Assembly (NCBI GenBank): GCA_021613535.1
Contig: CP075497.1
Location: forward strand, 620,001-684,000
Source: Adineta vaga
Lineage: Eukaryota > Animalia > Rotifera
Direction of reading: 5' to 3'
Length of the DNA: 64,000 nt
Shown here: piece after piece, positions 24-44,870 of the stretch
Position numbering within the stretch: position 1 is the stretch's first letter
Layout of the letters: the number at the start of each line of letters is the position of its first letter
The notes under the pieces: model-generated
Databases searched by the model: none
What the model saw: the letters and a program-made list of their open reading frames with translations, nothing else
Told to the model about the DNA's origin: nothing
Position numbers and translations under genes: made by a program

Positions 24-2831
24 ATGAACAACTTCGATGATGCTCTTTTCTATTTAAACAAATCAGTTAATTTATGTCGTTCTCACATGCCTAACAATCA
101 TCCTATATACGTCAGAATATATCTTACTCTCGCCACCATATATGAAACTATATCAGATTACAAGAAAGCTCTCGGATTCTACAAATCCGTGCTCTGCCTT
201 CTACTACAGATTGTATCAGAACATCATCCGGATATAGTTTTTGCATACGAACGAGTTGCTGCGATGTATATTAATTCTGGTCATTATGAGTTAGCTATGG
301 TTTATTGTCAAAAAGCATTAACGAACATAAAAAAATTCCAAAATGATGAAGATACAAATAAATATATAAATCCGATCGTCCCTATTTTCCTTTATAGTAC
401 TGTAGGAGCCCTTTATGCGCATCATACCGATGTGGCAAATGCTTTGGATTATGCCAAAAAAGCAGTCAATGAGTATATTAGATATGAATATATGATACCA
501 AAAACTTATCCAATAATAGAATCCATTTACAACAGCTTGGGATCAGCTTATGATGCAGTTGGTGATATAACTTCCGCATTAGATACTTACATAAAAGTTC
601 TTGATCTTCCGGTAAAAGATGTAAGTGTTCGAATAATGACACTTGGAAATATAGCCAACATGTATCTAAAGAGAAGTGACAGAGAAATGGCTTTAACATA
701 TTTGTACAAATCATATGACCTTATTTCCGAGATACCTTCATGTCTTATTAATTACAACCATCTCGCAAATATTATGTTTGGACTTTCCTATGCATATAAA
801 CATAAAAATGACTTTGAGACAGCTTTATCTTTCGCTGAAAAAAGTTTACAACTTCTACTCATTTCGCCAAAACAAGATTCCATTCGTATTGCAGGCGCGT
901 ACTCTTGGCTCGGTCTACTCTGTCCAGACAAAATGAAAATGTGTTGTGAAGAAATGATCAAGCTTATGTTGAAAGATAACTTTCCTGCATTACAAGGATC
1001 GATACATAACACTACTATTGGATGGTATTTTTATGAACAAAACAATTTCTCTGATGCAATAATTTATTTTCAAAAAGCATTAAATAAAATAATCGCAATC
1101 ATTCCAGTTTGTTACTCCGATTTGATGAACGCACACCAACGTCTAGCTTTGACGTACGTTAGTATGAAAACTACGGATTCAAATAATGCATTAATTCACT
1201 GTGAGGCAATCCATGATATTTATCTACAACTTGTAAACATGAAAGAAATTCCGTTAAAAGATAAAGCGAAAATGCGAAACATTGATGGCTTATTGCTGCC
1301 CGATGATATAAAACAAAGTTACTCGCATACGAGAAGCATTTTTAGTAATTATAGGACAATAGGATATATTTATAATCAAAGAGATGATCATAAACAAGCG
1401 TTGAATTATTTTCTAAAATCAGAAGAAATATTAACAGAGTATTTAGGTAAAACAGAATTAAAAGGCATAGAAACTCTTTATGGTTCAATCGAATGTGCAT
1501 ATGTCATGCTCAACGAATTTGATCAAGCACTTCATTATTGCGAGAAACGTTTCCAGCAGGAGTTAATAAATCAGCGAGATTATGGTAAATATTATGCTTC
1601 AATTGCTTGTTACTATTATCAGAAAAAAGAATATTTAGTTTCATTATCAAAATATAAAATAGCATTGACTTTCTTACATAATACAAAATCGAAAAATTAT
1701 AAATTATTGTCAGAAGCATATTATTATGTAGCATCTATATATATGAAGTTGAACAATTATGATTATGCTTCAATTTATCAAAAACTAGCGATGAATAATG
1801 CTTTGCAATGTGATCCAATAGATTATAAACACCTCTCAAATATGTATGATATGCTTGGATTTCATCTTTCTCTTTTGAAACCGTTTGATTGTGACGAGCC
1901 ATTATACTATTATCTGAAAGCAATTGAACATTCAAAACACCCAGTCAGTATTTATTCAGGCATTCAATTGCTTTATTTGACCAATGGTCAGTTCAATAAA
2001 GCAGATGAATACACAAAAAAGATCCTTGATATCAACCTCAATGAGATAAATGTAAACTATATAGATATTGCATCAACATACGTCACGATGGGAATTATTA
2101 ACTATAAACTTGGTAGATACAAAATGGCTCGAATATGTTATTTAACAGCTTTTTCAAATCTTGAAAAAAGCCAATGTAATAATACACACGCATATTATGG
2201 CAAATTTTATGATTATACTGGAATGATCTATTACGAGTATGGCCACTTGATAGAAGCCCGAAACTGTTGCCTCAAAGCTCGAGATATTTTTTTTTCGCAT
2301 GGAAATGAACCATTAATGGCTATAAACACATACATACATCTGGGCCTAGTTGAGTGTAAAATGGAAAATTATTATGATGCTTTAGATTATTTTGGACAAG
2401 CAATTGAACTTATATACAATCAAAAACTTCTCACACATGTTGCTGAAAGGATAATATACAATCATATTGGTTATGTCTACTATAAACTCGGTCAAACACA
2501 AGTAGCTATGAAAAATTATTTGAAATCGTTATCAATGCATAATAAATGTCTTAATCATCCCGATCTTGCTCAGGTATACAAAAATATTGGTTTAATACAT
2601 GAACATGACTCACAAAATTATCCGCTTGCATTGTCATTTTACAAACAAGCTGCACAGCTCGTCATAGATATTGAACATCCCCACAATATTTTATATAAAA
2701 GTATCATTCAAACACTCAAATTTAAAATGATAATGACTACAATTAACAATTTCATTCAGTCGATCAGCAGACTTTTTTTTTTAGGCGAAGCAGTCGAACA
2801 AAATATTGACATAAATTTGATTAATCCTTAG
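24..2831 (+). CDS. Tetratricopeptide repeat (TPR) protein, probably 5'-incomplete
   Basis: 935-aa ORF made of TPR-like units (e.g. YNSLGSAYDAVGDITSALDTYIKVL, YNHIGYVYYKLGQTQVAMKNYLKSL). The frame stays open to the window edge upstream of position 24. Confidence 0.85.
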   Translation: MNNFDDALFYLNKSVNLCRSHMPNNHPIYVRIYLTLATIYETISDYKKALGFYKSVLCLLLQIVSEHHPDIVFAYERVAAMYINSGHYELAMVYCQKALTNIKKFQNDEDTNKYINPIVPIFLYSTVGALYAHHTDVANALDYAKKAVNEYIRYEYMIPKTYPIIESIYNSLGSAYDAVGDITSALDTYIKVLDLPVKDVSVRIMTLGNIANMYLKRSDREMALTYLYKSYDLISEIPSCLINYNHLANIMFGLSYAYKHKNDFETALSFAEKSLQLLLISPKQDSIRIAGAYSWLGLLCPDKMKMCCEEMIKLMLKDNFPALQGSIHNTTIGWYFYEQNNFSDAIIYFQKALNKIIAIIPVCYSDLMNAHQRLALTYVSMKTTDSNNALIHCEAIHDIYLQLVNMKEIPLKDKAKMRNIDGLLLPDDIKQSYSHTRSIFSNYRTIGYIYNQRDDHKQALNYFLKSEEILTEYLGKTELKGIETLYGSIECAYVMLNEFDQALHYCEKRFQQELINQRDYGKYYASIACYYYQKKEYLVSLSKYKIALTFLHNTKSKNYKLLSEAYYYVASIYMKLNNYDYASIYQKLAMNNALQCDPIDYKHLSNMYDMLGFHLSLLKPFDCDEPLYYYLKAIEHSKHPVSIYSGIQLLYLTNGQFNKADEYTKKILDINLNEINVNYIDIASTYVTMGIINYKLGRYKMARICYLTAFSNLEKSQCNNTHAYYGKFYDYTGMIYYEYGHLIEARNCCLKARDIFFSHGNEPLMAINTYIHLGLVECKMENYYDALDYFGQAIELIYNQKLLTHVAERIIYNHIGYVYYKLGQTQVAMKNYLKSLSMHNKCLNHPDLAQVYKNIGLIHEHDSQNYPLALSFYKQAAQLVIDIEHPHNILYKSIIQTLKFKMIMTTINNFIQSISRLFFLGEAVEQNIDINLINP

Positions 2832-2907: not shown

Positions 2908-3442
2908 GCTGCTGTTAAGATAGCTTTTTCTACTTGTATATGTTTTTATTCAATTTAAATCTACAATACCTTCATGATGATTTTCTGGTGTTGATAATAA
3001 TTCAAATCGATTCTGTTGGAGAAATAGCTGACGAGATTAAAGAGATGTTGCACTGACAAAGCTTATTAATACTATTGATTGACGTATTTTCCATTGAATA
3101 CGATTGATGAACCGAAATAGTTTCAATAAAGAATTGTTGATATCGAGGTAAAATCAAGGATTTTGAAATTTTTACCTTGAGGTTAACACGTGCATTTTTT
3201 TTTCGAAGTTCGATGTACTGAATACCTATTATAGAATGTAGATAGGAATGATACACTTTTTTTTGCGTTGTAAGTAAGACTTATTCAAATACAAAAGAAA
3301 GATAAAATAAATGCAGAACAGTATTTTTTTTCTCTTTTCTTTTTTCTCTCTATCGTCCTATTTAATATTTGTGCATTACATTTAGTCAATAACATTATAC
3401 TTTTATACTTGATCATTTCAATACAAAATTATCGTTACGATA

Positions 3443-4757
3443 ATGACCGATGGTAAGTATAAATAAAATATTTCAATCTTTTATTTCATTAAAATTCATT
3501 CGTATTTTTTAGTACCATCATTTCCAATGGAGCGTACTTCACCTCTTCGTCCACCACCTGAATATACTAAATTGCGCAAAGAAAATCCAATATCAAAAGC
3601 AAAAATTTGGGATGGTAGTTTAGTTTGGTTGATAACTCGACATAATGATGTACATACAGTTCTTATTGATCCAAGATTCAGTAAAGTGCGTACACATCCA
3701 GGTTTTCCTGAAACTGGACCAGGAGGTAAAGCCGCAGCTCGTGCAACAAAACCAACTTTTGTTGATATGGATCCTCCTGAACATACGCGTCATCGAGGAA
3801 TGGTTGAACAAGATTTTACAATAGAAAAAATTGAATCAATGCGTCCTCAAATTCAACAAATTGTCGATCAAGTTATCGATAATATGATAAATAATCTGAC
3901 ACAACCAGTGGATTTAGTTGCTTCATTTGCAATGTCTGTTCCTACACTGATTATTTATAAAATATTAGGTATTCCTTATGAAGATCATGAATTTTTACAT
4001 AAATGCAATAGTATTCGTACTAATGGTAGTGCTACTTCAGCTGAAGCATCTGATGCGAGTAAAGATCTCATGGATTATCTTGGACGTTTAGTAAGTCTTT
4101 GTAAGAAATACGATATTCTACAGTAAGAATGTTTATCTTTAGGTGACAAAGAAAGCGAGGGAACCGAGTAATGATATTATTAGTCGTCTTGTAACTGAAC
4201 AAGTTCGCACTGGTCAATTAACTCATGAGGAACTTACTGCCATGTCATTTCTTCTTTTGGTTGCTGGAAATGCAACAACAGCAAATATGATTGCACTTGG
4301 TATTCTTACACTTCTTCAACATCCTGATCAACTTGCTGAACTTCGTCAAACTCCATCTCTTATTTACGATGCAGTTGAAGAAATCTTACGATATCTTACT
4401 GGTTCACAATTTGCTACACGTCGAGTAGCTATCGAAGATGTTGAAGTTGGTGGAACATTAATTAAGAAAGGTGAAGGTGTATGGGCTTTGAATGCATCAG
4501 CCAATGATGATGAAAGTATCTTTTCTAATCCAACACAATTTAATATTCATCGAAAACCAAATCCTCATTTATCATTCGGTGATGGTATTCATATTTGTGT
4601 TGCACAACATTTAGCACGTGCCGAAATTCAAATTGCTATCGCTACTCTTATTCGTCGTTTACCCAATCTTCAATTAGCTATTTCACTTGATCAAATACAT
4701 TATGTTACAGATTCATCACGCGATTATGCCGTCACTAATTTACCTATTAAATGGTAA
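3443..4757 (+). CDS. Cytochrome P450nor (CYP55-family NAD(P)H-dependent nitric oxide reductase)-like; exons 3443-3452, 3513-4090, 4143-4757
   Basis: GT-AG introns 3453-3512 and 4091-4142 give MTDVPSFPMER...LPIKW. CYP55 signature segments are present: FSKVRT..GFPE, PTFVDMDPPEH, IRTNGS, FLLLVAGNAT, and the heme motif FGDGIHIC. There is no N-terminal membrane anchor. Confidence 0.9.
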
Positions 4758-4858
4758 ATAATCAACTGAAGTATCTTAATTATTATTAGAACTATATTTA
4801 ATAAATAAACATAATTAGATTTCTTTTCAGTTATAATAATAAACTAGTTTGACTCTTG

Positions 4859-5711
4859 TTATCTTAACCAAAATATTTCGTATTCTAGATTGATGGGCTT
4901 CTGTTCTTCCATATAAATAACACGACAGATAGAACCTTGTTGCTCTTTAATGGTCGCTATTCTCGCCAATGTTCCTGGTAAGATAATATATTCCTTCTCT
5001 GATGGCATAAAAGAATACTCTACAATTGATCTTGCCGATATACTATCCATCCAAATGATTGTACAATTGAGACCATCACCTTGACCAGCAAATCTTTTAC
5101 ACACTTCTATATCACTAGAGAATGACATAGATAGCTAAAATACAAATTGATATGGTCTGACATTATATCGCAATCCAGACTTACTGTACGAATCATCGTA
5201 TCTTCGCGACCATGTTTTTCCCATGTTTGGAGAGGCAAATTAACGCCACGACAGATTCGAACCGTTGAAGGTTGCAATCTTGTGATGGCAATGTGGAACA
5301 ACTATAAAATAATAAATAAATTGTGGTAGACTATATATTAGAGAAGAAGTTCAAGTGTAAGATCGATACTTTGAGATATGGTGCCCATGTTGTGAGTGCT
5401 ACTTCATTTAATGATCGTAGAGCCTCATTGACCAGTCTTTGAAGAGGAGAATTTGTCGTATACAGAGCTATTGCACCTTTTTCATTTATATCAAGTTGTG
5501 AGTATATTGTCATTGCTGTAAAAAGACTTTTTATCACGAAACGTCGAGGTACAAGTGTGCCTGATTTGTTGTCATCGGTAAGGAGACCATTTAGAGCATT
5601 GGTAAGATTGACAAAATATGGTTTATCCAAATAGAATTTGGGTATATCATCGTGGTGTAGCTTAGCTAATACAATTCCCAGACAATAAAAGATGAGAATT
5701 ACGGAGCTCAT
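4859..5711 (-). CDS. Secreted R-S-E (ARTC-type) mono-ADP-ribosyltransferase; exons 5711-5370, 5301-5185, 5134-4859
   Basis: Two in-frame GT-AG introns join three ORF fragments. It has a signal-peptide-like N-terminus, AIALYT..LVNEALR, the catalytic R (ICRG), the S-x-S motif (MSFSS) and ExE (SEKEYIILPG). Confidence 0.8.
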
Positions 5712-10597: not shown

Positions 10598-13463
10598 TAC
10601 ACCCACACCCACACCCTCAAGAATTTATGTTGTCCAATTTCAACTGCACGTTGGTAGAATGATAGTGCTTTAGAAAATTGTTTCATTTTCTGATACACCT
10701 CTCCAATATTATTGTAATATTCAGCTAGATATGGATGATTTACTGGAAGAATTTTCTGAGTAAGCCCGACTGCTTTTTCAAAAAAGTAAAGTGCTTTCGA
10801 ATATTCGACTATTTTTGAATAGGTCTCACCAATCATGTTGTATATATAAGACAGGTCCTTCTTATTGAATAGAGAATATTTTTCTACAAGTTTCAGCGTC
10901 CTGTCATAAAACGAAAGTGCCATTGAACATTTACCCATTTGTTTATAGACAGTACCCATAATCATATATGATGAACTAAAACTGATATGATTGGGAGAAT
11001 AAGTTTTTCGCTGAATTTCAAGTTCTCTGTTACAAAATTCAGATGCTTTCGAGTATTCTCCAAGGTACCCGTATATAAGACCAAGTGCCATATAAGAAAT
11101 GCTTACACTGAGTTGGTTGATGAGAGAATTTTTTGCTCAATTTCAATTATTTTTTCATATGATTCAAGTGCTTTGAAATATTCTCTAAGTTCTAAATATA
11201 CTGCAGCAAAGTTACGTTGTGTAAAAGTAAAATTGTTAAGATCGAGTGGAAGTGTTTTCCGTTGAATTTCTAAAGCTTTTTCGTAAAATGAAAGTGCTCT
11301 GGTGTATTCTCCAAAATGTTCATACAGGTTACCTATACGATTATAGTCAATCGCTATCAGTGGATCATTCAGCGGGAGATTGACTTTATTGATTTCAAGT
11401 GCTTTTTCATAAGCTAAAAGTGCTTTTGATAATTCTCCCATCTTCTTATAGATATCACCGATGGAAAGGTAGTAAACAGCAAAAATACTATGAGTGGCAG
11501 AATAATTTTTCTGATATACCTGAAATGCTTTACCATAAAACCAAAATGATTTTGAATAATCGTTGATATTACTCGACAGTTTGCCAAGCTTTTCATAGGC
11601 GATAGCCCATTCATCATTATATTCAGAGTATAATTTTTCATACATAGGAAGTGGTTTTTCTGCAAATAAACGTGCTTTTTGAAATTCTCCTTGTTCACTG
11701 TATATCATCGCAATATCGATGTAGTTATTTGCTAAATCTTGATGAGTTTCTGAAAGAGTTTTTTCGTTAATTTCAATTACTTTTTCATGGAAAAAGATTC
11801 CTTTTACGTATTCGCCTAAATTGTAATACGCATTAGCCATGTATGTATAGTCCGAAACTAAGTTTGGATGATGAGAAGAAAAAATTGTTTTGTTCATTTC
11901 AAGACTCTTTTCCAAGAAATGAAGTGCTTTCGAATATTCGATCATCTCAAAATATATAATACCCATATTACTGTATATTGTAGCCAGAGTAGGATGAATT
12001 GAAGGGAGAATTTTCTGATAGATCTCAAGTGCTTTCAAGAAAAACGCAAGCGCATCTTGATAACTGTTGCTTGTCAGTTTCTCACTTCCAAGAATTTGAT
12101 AGACAAATGCTCTGAATTTATCATCCGATGGTTGATTGAGTAAGTTCCTATATATTTGTTCGCACCTGACAGTTTCACCCAGTTGTAACAGTAAATTACC
12201 CAAACGATCCCATCCTATCAAGTTGTCAGTTTTTTCTCGTAAAGATGCAGTTAAAGCACTAAGTTGTGTGTCATTATCAGCTGTAAGAACAAGTTTTACA
12301 TGCCATAATCTGTTGTTTCCATTAATTTGTTCGATATTACCAATACGAAAGACAGTGTGCATAGAAAAGAGAATCTCCTGTTCTGATCCATAACGACTAA
12401 CATTGGTCAGAAGTGCGAAAGGAGTTGTAGATACTATTGGATCAATCATTATTGTGAAAAATATACCCATCATATCCGGATTCAACAAAGCACGACGAGC
12501 AAAACGCTCCGATACCTGTGGATTTTTGCTGGGCGACAAGAAATTGTGAAAAGACAACAGTCCTCCTTTGGTATACATCAATGTTTCAAAAGCTGTCTGT
12601 GTCATTCCTTGTCCTCGATAGACAGTAATAGGTTGCCATTGTCTCTCATTTGATTGTTCGAAATAGAGTTTTTCGATTTGTCGATGAAGGCATTGAATGA
12701 AAAAACTCATCTTCAGAATAGTTTCTACTTCAAGATTGCACAATGCCTGATTAAGCATTCGATAGAGAAAACTTTCATAAGTGTACCACCAAATAGGCGT
12801 ATGATTATGATAATCTCGTTCAAATTCTGCTATTTTTTCTAATTCACTTTGTTTGTTAGCATATTCATTACGACAATAAGCAGTAAGTTCTTTAACAGCT
12901 TGTACATCATCATAATCTGTTTCCAATAGGATTTCTTTAAATAATTGTGTATACATAAAAGTTTGATCTAACTGATTTAAATTTTGAGTAGACGTTGAAC
13001 TTGTTGTTGCGGAGACAAAACTCATCGAGATTACATCTTGATCACATTGTTGCACAGCTTGCTTTATTGACTCATATAGAACTTCAACTTTGATAAAGAC
13101 ACCTCGAATTTTTGTCCATTGTTCATGATAATCCTTGTTTTGACAGAAAACGAAGATAGTTTGAATCTGAGACATATCATGGATTTCTGGTACAATCTTT
13201 TGACTGAACCTATCGGAAACAATTATGAAAATATATGCAGTTTTATTATCACGAAGGAAATTAATGCATTGATCAACATCAGTAAAGATTTCGATGTTAT
13301 TAACAATCTGACGGAGACGAGAGAGAAAATAACGAAATACATCTTTAGATTCGTCAATATTGACATCCAGCCAGACGAGTCGAAAATTCTGCAAGCTACG
13401 TTTTCCTCTGATGCTGATATCTGTAGTCAATTGTTGCATTGAAACATTGCCGTTTTTATCCAT
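10597..13463 (-). pseudogene. Receiver-like domain + ADP-ribosyltransferase + TPR array protein, frameshifted at about 11103 and 3'-truncated
   Basis: N-terminal LVWLD...IFIIVS...IFVFC domain, ART motifs VYRGQGM / FLSPS / SEQEILF, then TPRs. ORFs 11103-13463 and 10597-11091 are one base out of frame. The C-terminus runs into a telomere-like motif (RVWVWV*). Confidence 0.75.
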
Positions 13464-15770: not shown

Positions 15771-17741
15771 TCATTGAGCAATCGTAGGAAATGAAGTAAT
15801 ACGAAGTCGTGCGGAGCCCATTGGTATCAATGTAAGTATTTCATCAGGTTGATCACTTTTAACAGGTGATTGCGGTAATAATCCGATTACATTTTGACTG
15901 TCTGCTTTCCATTCTGGAATACGACGACCTCGAGCTTCAATATTAAGTGGTACTGTATTTGTTGTAAAATGATTTTCTGAATTAATCTTATTTTTATTAC
16001 GTTTAATGACCCATTTGTCAACACTTGATAAGAGTAAACCATAATTCCAATTTGATTCTGTTGTTACTTGATATTCGGGCCACTCGTCTGTACCACTTAT
16101 GCGAGTATATTGTTCGTTCAAAGCTAGAGAAAACGTTAAAGGTCCATAATTTACAGAAACAGCATTATGATTTGATGTCCAAGTTTTCGTATCTAATTGC
16201 ATTGGTAATGTCAATGATAAAACATCATTATTCATCCAAAGACGATCAAGAATAATGAATGAACCATCGCTTGGCGTTTGTCGATTAAAAATAGGTATTC
16301 CATTTAATGTAACAATTGGAGATTTCACACACCAACGTGGTACACGTAAATAAAGTTTAAATTGTGTTGATGTTGACAATTGAAATCGAAACTGAATCTT
16401 TTCGTCAAATGGATAATCTGTTTCTTCAATAATTGTTACTTGAGTTCCATCGTTGGCGCCAACTAATGCTGTTACTTGATTCGATACATATAATGCAGCA
16501 CATAAACCACCATCATACGTAGCTAGCCATGCTTCTTCACAATAATATGGCCATCCTATACCATAATTGTGTGGACAACAACGATACTGATACACTCCTG
16601 GTTTATAAGCAAGCAATGCCCATCCATTATCTTCAAACTGATTTTGAGTTTTAACTTGATCATCAAGTTGAATAGAATTTGGACATGTTATATAATGTAA
16701 TCCACGAGCTACAAATGGATCAAATGCAGCTGGTAATGAATTAATTGCGAGTGTTTCACATCGATCGAGCCATAAACCATCGCCTGTAACACGTGCGAGC
16801 ATTTGAAATGTATGCATAAATTCGACAATGCCACATGTTTCAAGACCTTGTCGAGGATCAGAATAACCGGGACGACAATATTCATCACCAGCAATACTTC
16901 CACCCGGAAGTTGTCCATATTGATCAACAAGACTTTGATACTGGTTATAGGTAGCTTGGACTAATCGAGGATCAGGTGGATTAACAAGAAGAGAATAATA
17001 TGCTGGTTCACGAAATCCTTGAGCAAAATTCACATTATGTAATGTTGGTGTTGTATTAACCCAATCTACTGAATTAGCATGAAATTTATGCATTAAATCA
17101 AGTAGCCAATCTGTATTAACTGTTCGATTGTACAACCAAATCACTGTGTCGATACCCTCAGCCCATCGGGTACCACCCCATCCGCGAGTAAATACGGCAA
17201 CTGGTTGTTGACTAACAAACTGAAACCATTTCAAAAGAAATGGAATAACACGTGCATCACCAGTACATTCATACAATGAACGAAAAATATTTGCAAACAG
17301 CATTGCTGGCCATAAATCAGCAACACCTTCAAGCGATGTTCGTAAGGTATTCGGCCCAAACCATCCATCAGCTTGCTGAGTAGCTATTACTCCATCGATC
17401 CAACGATGAGCTAAGTTTAAAACAGTCTGATCGCCAGTAACGAGACCGAGTTCAGTATATCCACGTAACCAATACGGTAATTCTTCCCATGCTTTCTTAG
17501 TTGAATCAACCCAACCACATGTATCATAATCAAGATATCTAGATATTTCAGAAAGTCGCCCATTCAAACCATTTAATTGAAGATTTATTTGACCAAGTAA
17601 CCAACCACCAGGTTTAACTGCTCCAGCTGGAAGTTTCTGAAATGGAACTGGTTGAATTGGCGCTCGATTTTGAACATAATGACTATTTTTTATATCATCT
17701 GTTGATGATATTTGTACACGACGAACAAGACGCACAGTCAT
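15771..17741 (-). CDS. GH127/GH146 beta-L-arabinofuranosidase-like glycoside hydrolase (DUF1680 type)
   Basis: 656-aa intronless ORF with VKPGGWL, WEELPYWLRG, LHNVN, GDE, ETCG, RCCPHN, ETDYPF and LRVPRW, matching the Zn/Cys-nucleophile glycosidase pattern. Confidence 0.85.
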   Translation of the reverse strand: MTVRLVRRVQISSTDDIKNSHYVQNRAPIQPVPFQKLPAGAVKPGGWLLGQINLQLNGLNGRLSEISRYLDYDTCGWVDSTKKAWEELPYWLRGYTELGLVTGDQTVLNLAHRWIDGVIATQQADGWFGPNTLRTSLEGVADLWPAMLFANIFRSLYECTGDARVIPFLLKWFQFVSQQPVAVFTRGWGGTRWAEGIDTVIWLYNRTVNTDWLLDLMHKFHANSVDWVNTTPTLHNVNFAQGFREPAYYSLLVNPPDPRLVQATYNQYQSLVDQYGQLPGGSIAGDEYCRPGYSDPRQGLETCGIVEFMHTFQMLARVTGDGLWLDRCETLAINSLPAAFDPFVARGLHYITCPNSIQLDDQVKTQNQFEDNGWALLAYKPGVYQYRCCPHNYGIGWPYYCEEAWLATYDGGLCAALYVSNQVTALVGANDGTQVTIIEETDYPFDEKIQFRFQLSTSTQFKLYLRVPRWCVKSPIVTLNGIPIFNRQTPSDGSFIILDRLWMNNDVLSLTLPMQLDTKTWTSNHNAVSVNYGPLTFSLALNEQYTRISGTDEWPEYQVTTESNWNYGLLLSSVDKWVIKRNKNKINSENHFTTNTVPLNIEARGRRIPEWKADSQNVIGLLPQSPVKSDQPDEILTLIPMGSARLRITSFPTIAQ

Positions 17742-26160: not shown

Positions 26161-26234
26161 AGGGTGTGGGTGTGGGTGTGGGTGTGGATGTGGGTCAAAC
26201 TATCTCTTCTTCACTCATACTCACAGGCACACTC
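26161..26234. repeat. Telomere-like hairpin element
   Basis: AGGG(TGTGGG)3TGTGGATGTGGGT, spacer TATCTCTTCTTC, then CACACCCACACTTCAAG. Confidence 0.75.
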
Positions 26235-44788: not shown

Positions 44789-44870
44789 CGAGGGTGTGGG
44801 TGGGCATGAGTATTCGCCTGATTCTCACTCACATGACACGCTCACGTCCACCCACACCCACACCCTCAAG
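44789..44870. repeat. Telomere-like hairpin element abutting the 21-bp minisatellite
   Basis: GAGGGTGTGGGTGGG...CCCACACCCACACCCTCAAG. Confidence 0.75.

Follow-up and report, generated by a model that had tools for sequence, protein, structure and literature searches.

The bdelloid rotifer Adineta vaga carries, with a probability that we put at roughly three in four, a functional gene of the CYP55 (P450nor) family that is one of two paralogues, came from a eukaryotic donor and likely serves in the removal of nitric oxide (NO). The finding places a known enzyme family in a host lineage that is new to it, and the structure of the gene is informative. Fungi and algae owe their production of nitrous oxide (N2O) to P450nor, and a conserved, expressed copy in an animal would extend the enzyme to the Metazoa; such an animal may make N2O with an enzyme of its own, a question that is directly testable in a culturable organism. 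In a survey of RefSeq as of 2016 (Higgins et al., 2018; PMC6161760), p450nor turned up in fungi and in three green algae and nowhere else. Our literature search returned no paper joining P450nor or CYP55 with a rotifer or with Adineta, nor “nitric oxide reductase” with a bdelloid, and the match reported below between the intron sites of the rotifer gene and those of green-algal and fungal CYP55 genes is new here. Such matches are a rare means of tying an acquired gene to a eukaryotic donor through its gene structure and not through a tree only.

The gene lies about 624 kb into contig C6 of a chromosome-scale assembly of six contigs and 100.8 Mb, within a stretch of 64,000 nucleotides (C6:620001-684000) that was analysed as a whole and is referred to here as the window. 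Its three exons of 10, 578 and 615 nt add up to 1203 nt, or 400 codons and a TAA stop, and encode a soluble P450 of 400 amino acids (Table 1). The junctions can be read directly as ATGACCGATG/GTAAGT...TTTTAG/TA CCA... and ...CGT TTA/GTAAGT...CTTTAG/GTG ACA..., and the mini-exon fits the orthologues derived from bdelloid transcripts, which start M-x-[DE]-V-PSFP. Contigs of the public run X1, mapped on window positions 3200-5000, cover only 3411-4764 and contain two GT..AG joints, 3452/3513 (60 nt skipped) and 4090/4143 (52 nt skipped); the second joint is also spliced in contigs of run X2, and the contigs of both runs are all 100% identical to the window. The two runs are taken as RNA because their contigs are spliced and exon-only. 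The DNA run X17, by comparison, is continuous over 3200-5000, introns and flanks included, with zero joints. The A. vaga gene is transcribed and spliced, and transcript-like Logan contigs of other bdelloids encode orthologues of 399-400 amino acids. Since the 400-residue product has neither a membrane anchor nor an evident targeting extension, it is probably cytosolic. Among public A. vaga proteins the window copy has no match, only its paralogue on contig C1 being returned; the public annotation may lack the window gene or hold a different model of it, perhaps owing to the 10-nt first exon.

Table 1. Features of the CYP55-type gene, in positions of the window; residues are numbered as in Fusarium CYP55A1.
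Feature	Position	Strand	Basis
CYP55-type P450 gene, three exons	3443-4757	+	
Minimal 5' UTR	3411-3442	+	Record 1 of run X1 (RNA-like contig) starts at 3411 and continues into exon 1
Exon 1, 10-nt mini-exon, ATGACCGATG	3443-3452	+	Direct reading; spliced to 3513 in X1 contig
Intron 1, 60 nt, GTAAGT..TTTTAG, phase 1	3453-3512	+	Absent from X1 contig, retained in DNA run X17
Exon 2, N-terminal half, B' helix and NADH-binding residues	3513-4090	+	Match to CYP55A1 chains (scores in text)
Exon 2 codons K62, R64, E71, G73	3683-3685, 3689-3691, 3710-3712, 3716-3718	+	Alignment to Fusarium
Exon 2 codons G75, D88, R174	3722-3724, 3764-3766, 4016-4018	+	Alignment to Fusarium
Intron 2, 52 nt, GTAAGT..CTTTAG, phase 0	4091-4142	+	Absent from X1 and X2 contigs, retained in X17
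Exon 3, C-terminal half, I helix, proton-relay residues, haem loop, TAA stop (4755-4757)	4143-4757	+	Match to CYP55A1 (score in text); Pfam p450 90 bits
Exon 3 codons T243, S286, R291	4275-4277, 4404-4406, 4419-4421	+	Alignment to Fusarium
Exon 3 codons C352, R392, D393	4596-4598, 4719-4721, 4722-4724	+	Alignment to Fusarium
Putative 3' UTR, AATAAA at 4800-4805 and 4804-4809	4758-4809	+	X1 contig extends to 4764; poly(A) signal from the letters alone

Judged from its sequence, the gene is a member of the CYP55 (P450nor) family. In searches, alignments and trees, exon 2 (window:3515-4090) and exon 3 (window:4143-4754) were entered as separate rows. Against solved structures, exon 2 scored 205-210 bits (E about 1e-60) with chains of Fusarium CYP55A1 versus 143 bits with the next P450, and exon 3 scored 193 bits with CYP55A1 versus 176 bits with the runner-up; the Pfam p450 domain is seen in both, with exon 2 alone at 19.6 bits, below the 22.8-bit cut-off. 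P450 families are named by an identity of at least 40% to named members, and the two large exons reach 52-59% with the CYP55 proteins of fungi and algae. Fusarium oxysporum P450nor (CYP55A1; PDB 1ROM, 1CL6, 1XQD and further entries), likewise a soluble P450 of about 400 amino acids and about 54-58% identical, can be aligned end to end with the rotifer protein, except for a single additional residue and a deletion of two in exon 2 and indels of 2 and 1 residues in exon 3. The two have in common the residues of the NADH pocket, salt bridges, proton relay and haem loop, including the Ala after the Cys ligand; the host here is an animal. Green-algal CYP55 proteins, from Chlamydomonas reinhardtii (CHLRE_01g007950, which we take to be CYP55B1), Myrmecia bisecta and Trebouxia, are about 52-54% identical and carry the same signature residues. 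The next-best matches after CYP55 are actinobacterial proteins of the CYP105 type (P450 SU-1, MoxA) and TxtE-like ones, of the same soluble P450 fold class and 35-42% identical; CYP105-type hydroxylases use ferredoxin partners and oxygenate organic substrates.

The residues set the rotifer protein apart from these bacterial relatives. In Fusarium numbering (P0262), the window copy keeps Lys62, Arg64, Glu71, Asp88, Arg174, Thr243, Ser286, Arg291, Cys352, Ala354, Arg392 and Asp393, that is, the whole set of NADH-binding and positive-cluster residues (Arg64, Arg174, Lys62, Lys/Arg291, Arg392), the Glu71-Arg64-Asp88 network and, at aligned positions in exon 3, the proton-delivery residues Thr243, Ser286 and Asp393. 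In the haem-thiolate loop, FGDGIHICVAQH, the Cys ligand is followed two residues on by Ala (position 354), as is CYP55-like, a position taken by Gly in the bacterial P450s compared. All eight tabulated rotifer sequences, although only about 70% identical overall, keep K62, R64, E71, D88, R174, T243, S286, R291, C352, A354 and D393, and position 392 is Arg in seven of the eight, with His in one Logan transcript; the tabulated algal, chytrid and basidiomycete CYP55 proteins also keep the signature residues, except at position 392 (Lys or Ala). By contrast, most CYP55-specific residues differ in the bacterial sequences compared, which were five CYP105-like proteins and, from actinobacterial genomes, the seven closest hits examined (identity no higher than 42%): the sampled CYP105 and TxtE-like proteins lack most of Lys62, Glu71, Asp88, Arg174, Ser286 and Asp393 and have Gly in place of the Ala that follows the haem Cys. 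A few of these relatives keep individual residues, for example Arg64 or Asp88, Ser286 and Asp393 are substituted in every one compared, and Thr243 and Cys352 are generic P450 residues.

Two IQ-TREE runs under LG+C20+F+G4, with 10-12 bacterial P450s as outgroup, separate CYP55, bdelloids included, from the bacterial P450s at 100/100 in both trees, and unite the bdelloid sequences, with both window exon rows, at 100/99. Fungal and green-algal CYP55 fall into one clade (100/100 in the first run, 100/99 in the second) in which Chlamydomonadales branch first, then a chytrid group, a group containing the trebouxiophytes Myrmecia and Trebouxia, and Dikarya; the rotifers are joined to neither algal group. 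All sampled fungal and algal CYP55 together are the sister group of the bdelloids, in trees whose root is insecure because the outgroup branches are long, and the rotifer gene appears as a deep, separate CYP55 lineage nested in no sampled donor group. Because of this sister position, the donor is taken to lie outside the fungi and algae sampled. A green-algal donor, which the intron pattern described below would fit, finds no support in the protein tree: when constrained to group with Chlamydomonadales, a grouping chosen after the tree had been seen, the rotifers gave a tree 29.5 log-likelihood units worse, which rejects it weakly (AU p 0.036). The trees and the signature residues together rule out a CYP105 hydroxylase. 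A sequence-only reading of the window had described a P450nor of the CYP55 kind, with three exons encoding a soluble protein of about 400 amino acids and with R64, E71, D88, R174, T243, S286, D393 and the haem Cys in place, and had named RNA mapping of the splice junctions and a phylogeny with CYP55 and bacterial CYP105 as checks. It is borne out on these points by the structure matches, the residues at their aligned positions, the 400 codons and TAA, both joints in the RNA-like run X1 with the second also in X2, and a place inside CYP55 at 100/100.

The two introns offer evidence on origin that is separate from the trees. Exact exon junctions of public genes were mapped onto a single alignment, in which fungi are represented by three genes (Fusarium, Collybia, Quaeritorhiza). 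Intron 1 lies in phase 1 in the codon immediately before P-x-F-P, a site and phase also occupied in Myrmecia bisecta, the chytrid Quaeritorhiza, the basidiomycete Collybia, Rotaria sordida and the A. vaga C1 copy. Intron 2 lies in phase 0 between Fusarium residues 198 and 199, at a site and phase common to Myrmecia, Chlamydomonas, R. sordida, Didymodactylos and the A. vaga C1 copy and empty in all three fungal genes mapped. The Myrmecia gene thus has introns at both rotifer sites and phases and the Chlamydomonas gene at that of intron 2; the first exon of the latter is also 10 nt long, and its phase-1 intron is 2 aligned codons off the rotifer site. The Fusarium gene, by contrast, has seven introns against the rotifer two, with neither rotifer site among its seven, and algal CYP55 genes have 9-10 long introns where the rotifer gene has two short ones. 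Seven further sites are common to three to five non-rotifer genes, and the rotifers lack all seven. The chance of two matches out of two is about 1e-4, a rough figure that takes about 12 distinct sites over roughly 1200 site-phase combinations and ignores proto-splice-site preference. As both introns stand at the site and phase of an algal or fungal CYP55 intron, both were most likely inherited from the eukaryotic donor, and gain in the host is rejected as the simplest reading. The “host-style” introns of the sequence-only reading are so in size (60 and 52 nt) but not in their sites and phases, which are those of algal and fungal CYP55 introns.

Residence in the rotifer genome is clear from several sides. 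DNA contigs of X17 cross both gene borders uninterrupted, GC3 is 0.13 in the gene against 0.27 in a flanking TPR ORF, and the introns are 15-27% GC. The gene copies are under purifying selection, with dN/dS (NG86) against a bdelloid transcript (L024) of 0.08 for exon 2 and 0.10 for exon 3, at a dS of about 1.2. Orthologues are annotated, as unnamed P450s in public databases, in A. ricciae, R. sordida, R. socialis, R. magnacalcarata, Rotaria sp. Silwood2 and Didymodactylos carnosus, so that CYP55 is found in every sampled bdelloid genus; Adineta, Rotaria and Didymodactylos represent three bdelloid families. Among the best 120 hits in either protein search there was no animal other than bdelloids. 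The gene has the marks of horizontal acquisition by bdelloids, namely nearest relatives that are non-metazoan, bdelloid-wide occurrence, integration and expression. The public D. carnosus model (284 aa) is truncated and has a doubtful 81-nt intron; in the DNA of that species both large exons are intact (L023 2743-3327 and 5945-6577).

The neighbours in the window are TPR and TPR+ART proteins, a cathepsin-L-like gene (I29 and C1 domains, with introns) and a GH127 glycosidase. The large TPR proteins lie at 11103-13463 (-) and 24-2831 (+), one of them with an NAD:arginine ADP-ribosyltransferase domain; such TPR and TPR+ART genes are presumably of a kind expanded in bdelloids. An intronless ORF of 656 amino acids at 15771-17741 (-), with GH127 beta-L-arabinofuranosidase domains and in a stretch of raised GC (0.37), is a further candidate for an acquired gene. 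The “metazoan-type” setting seen by the sequence-only reading therefore holds for the cathepsin-L-like gene, which is animal-like, but not for the GH127 gene, which looks foreign. Interstitial runs of TGTGGG, which we take to be the bdelloid telomeric repeat, occur at 10602-10619, 26165-26194 and 44851-44868 (5 matches with 1 mismatch allowed; 0 expected); interstitial telomeric tracts are typical of foreign-gene-rich regions in bdelloids.

Two other accounts of the gene’s origin have to be set against acquisition. Contamination by a fungus or alga, or an assembly chimera, could be suspected from the fungal and algal affinity of the nearest non-rotifer relatives, but is next to negligible in probability and is rejected by the six-contig, chromosome-scale assembly, the continuous DNA contigs over both gene borders, a GC3 more AT-rich than that of the flanking host ORF with introns of only 52-60 nt, the paralogue on another chromosome, and orthologues from independent genome projects that form one clade in the trees and are only 52-59% identical to any fungus or alga. 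Vertical inheritance of an old eukaryotic gene, lost in other animals and with the shared introns as ancestral ones, has in its favour that the intron sites are common to rotifers, green algae and fungi and that bdelloids branch as sister to the rest of CYP55 instead of inside a donor group. It is nonetheless very improbable, since almost every opisthokont and plant lineage would have to have lost the gene, the best 120 hits of each search contain no animal proteins but bdelloid ones, the survey cited above records none outside fungi and three green algae, and the window has telomeric repeats at interstitial sites as well as another gene that is likely foreign. Horizontal acquisition, which the sequence-only reading had proposed for a domesticated gene in an animal genome, accords with the foreign relatives, the expression and splicing, the purifying selection and the host codon usage, and its concern over a contaminant is answered by the DNA contigs across the borders, the paralogue and the clade of bdelloid orthologues. 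A eukaryotic donor would have passed the gene, as intron-containing genomic DNA, to an ancestor that the sampled bdelloids share; the gene would later have lost all but two introns, the survivors shrinking to host size, and acquired host codon usage.

The second A. vaga copy, at C1:4333945-4334547 (I4U23_001377; P0173), adds to the sequence-only reading that the window gene is not a singleton. The two copies are 69-74% identical over the two large exons and agree in both introns and in the signature residues, and the public model of I4U23_001377 has the same exon 2/3 junction as that read in the window. The C1 paralogue differs in its long tree branch (0.30-0.33) and in a Ser/Arg-rich N-terminal extension of 32 residues that lacks acidic residues until its end and is encoded by a first exon (L002 706-801) longer than the 10-nt exon 1 of the window copy; this extension resembles a mitochondrial presequence. 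No sign of a block duplication was seen, as the C6 and C1 loci have no neighbours in common when about 20 kb on each side of the C1 copy are compared with the first 30 kb of the window; the loci of R. sordida and Didymodactylos likewise gave no shared neighbours.

If it works as Fusarium P450nor does, the enzyme would reduce NO to N2O. Its ferric haem would bind NO, NAD(P)H held in the distal pocket by Arg64, Arg174 and the Lys62/Arg291/Arg392 cluster would transfer a hydride directly, and a second NO would then give N2O and water, with protons supplied via Thr243, Ser286 and Asp393 and no redox partner required. The window copy has Gly at positions 73 and 75, where wild-type Fusarium has Ser at both, and the top-scoring PDB matches of exon 2 are 1ULW and 1XQD because these chains are also Gly/Gly there; both are, we assume, engineered S73G/S75G mutants with gained NADPH activity. 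The pair Gly73 and Gly75 therefore predicts use of NADPH besides NADH. As to the source of NO, the copper nitrite reductase (NirK) that makes up the fungal denitrification module with P450nor was not found in the genome as a whole, where TIGR02376 reached at best 42 bits against its 296-bit cut-off and its top matches were generic multicopper oxidases, and no NO synthase domain was detected in the genome. Without either enzyme, a denitrification chain and an NOS-derived substrate are both unlikely, and the likely role is removal of NO, which the sequence-only reading had named beside N2O production, by an activity predicted from sequence. The NO removed would be external, or would come from non-enzymatic and mitochondrial nitrite chemistry.

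It is rather unlikely that a true rotifer CYP55 gene has instead been turned to another use, either an NO-dependent nitration or small-molecule step of secondary metabolism, as with TxtE, or a monooxygenase fed by a redox partner. Links between p450nor and secondary metabolism are described for some fungi (Higgins et al., 2018; PMC6161760), nitration with NO is known of TxtE, a related P450, bdelloids make use of biosynthetic genes that they have acquired, among them a P450 adjacent to a PKS-NRPS (PMC11258130), and the bdelloid clade is a deep and separate branch of CYP55. Nearly all the residues for partner-free use of NADH are, however, kept across rotifer sequences of such modest overall identity, and a biosynthetic cluster is rejected for the window, whose 64 kb hold zero PKS- or NRPS-sized ORFs and no other biosynthetic neighbour, with neighbours conserved neither between the A. 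vaga copies nor with the R. sordida and Didymodactylos loci.

Within the preferred reading of NO removal, a bolder proposal concerns the two copies together. Fungi have both mitochondrial and cytosolic forms of P450nor, and by analogy bdelloids might run a two-compartment system, with a cytosolic Gly73/Gly75 form encoded in the window and a mitochondrial form encoded on C1, through which the animal would convert NO to N2O with its own enzymes. The proposal is speculative and, on balance, unlikely. If true, bdelloids would turn NO into N2O, for example during hypoxia or on rehydration after drying, no animal before them would have been shown to release N2O through an enzyme of its own genome instead of through gut microbes, and the gene would document a eukaryote-to-animal transfer with surviving donor introns.

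The intron-site mapping also shows that most positions are common to fungal and green-algal CYP55 genes. The genes of Fusarium, Collybia, Quaeritorhiza, Myrmecia and Chlamydomonas (L015, L016, L018, L019 and L022) have most intron sites and phases in common, with four sites in all five, two in four and one in three, plus the N-terminal site, and this sharing implies common descent or an intron-bearing transfer between the groups. In the trebouxiophyte-like CYP55 group, two members are intronless on their contigs (L020 301-1515; L021 301-1602), one with a downstream gene overlapping by 7 nt and the other filed under the MAG of a lichen fungus (Pleopsidium flavum).
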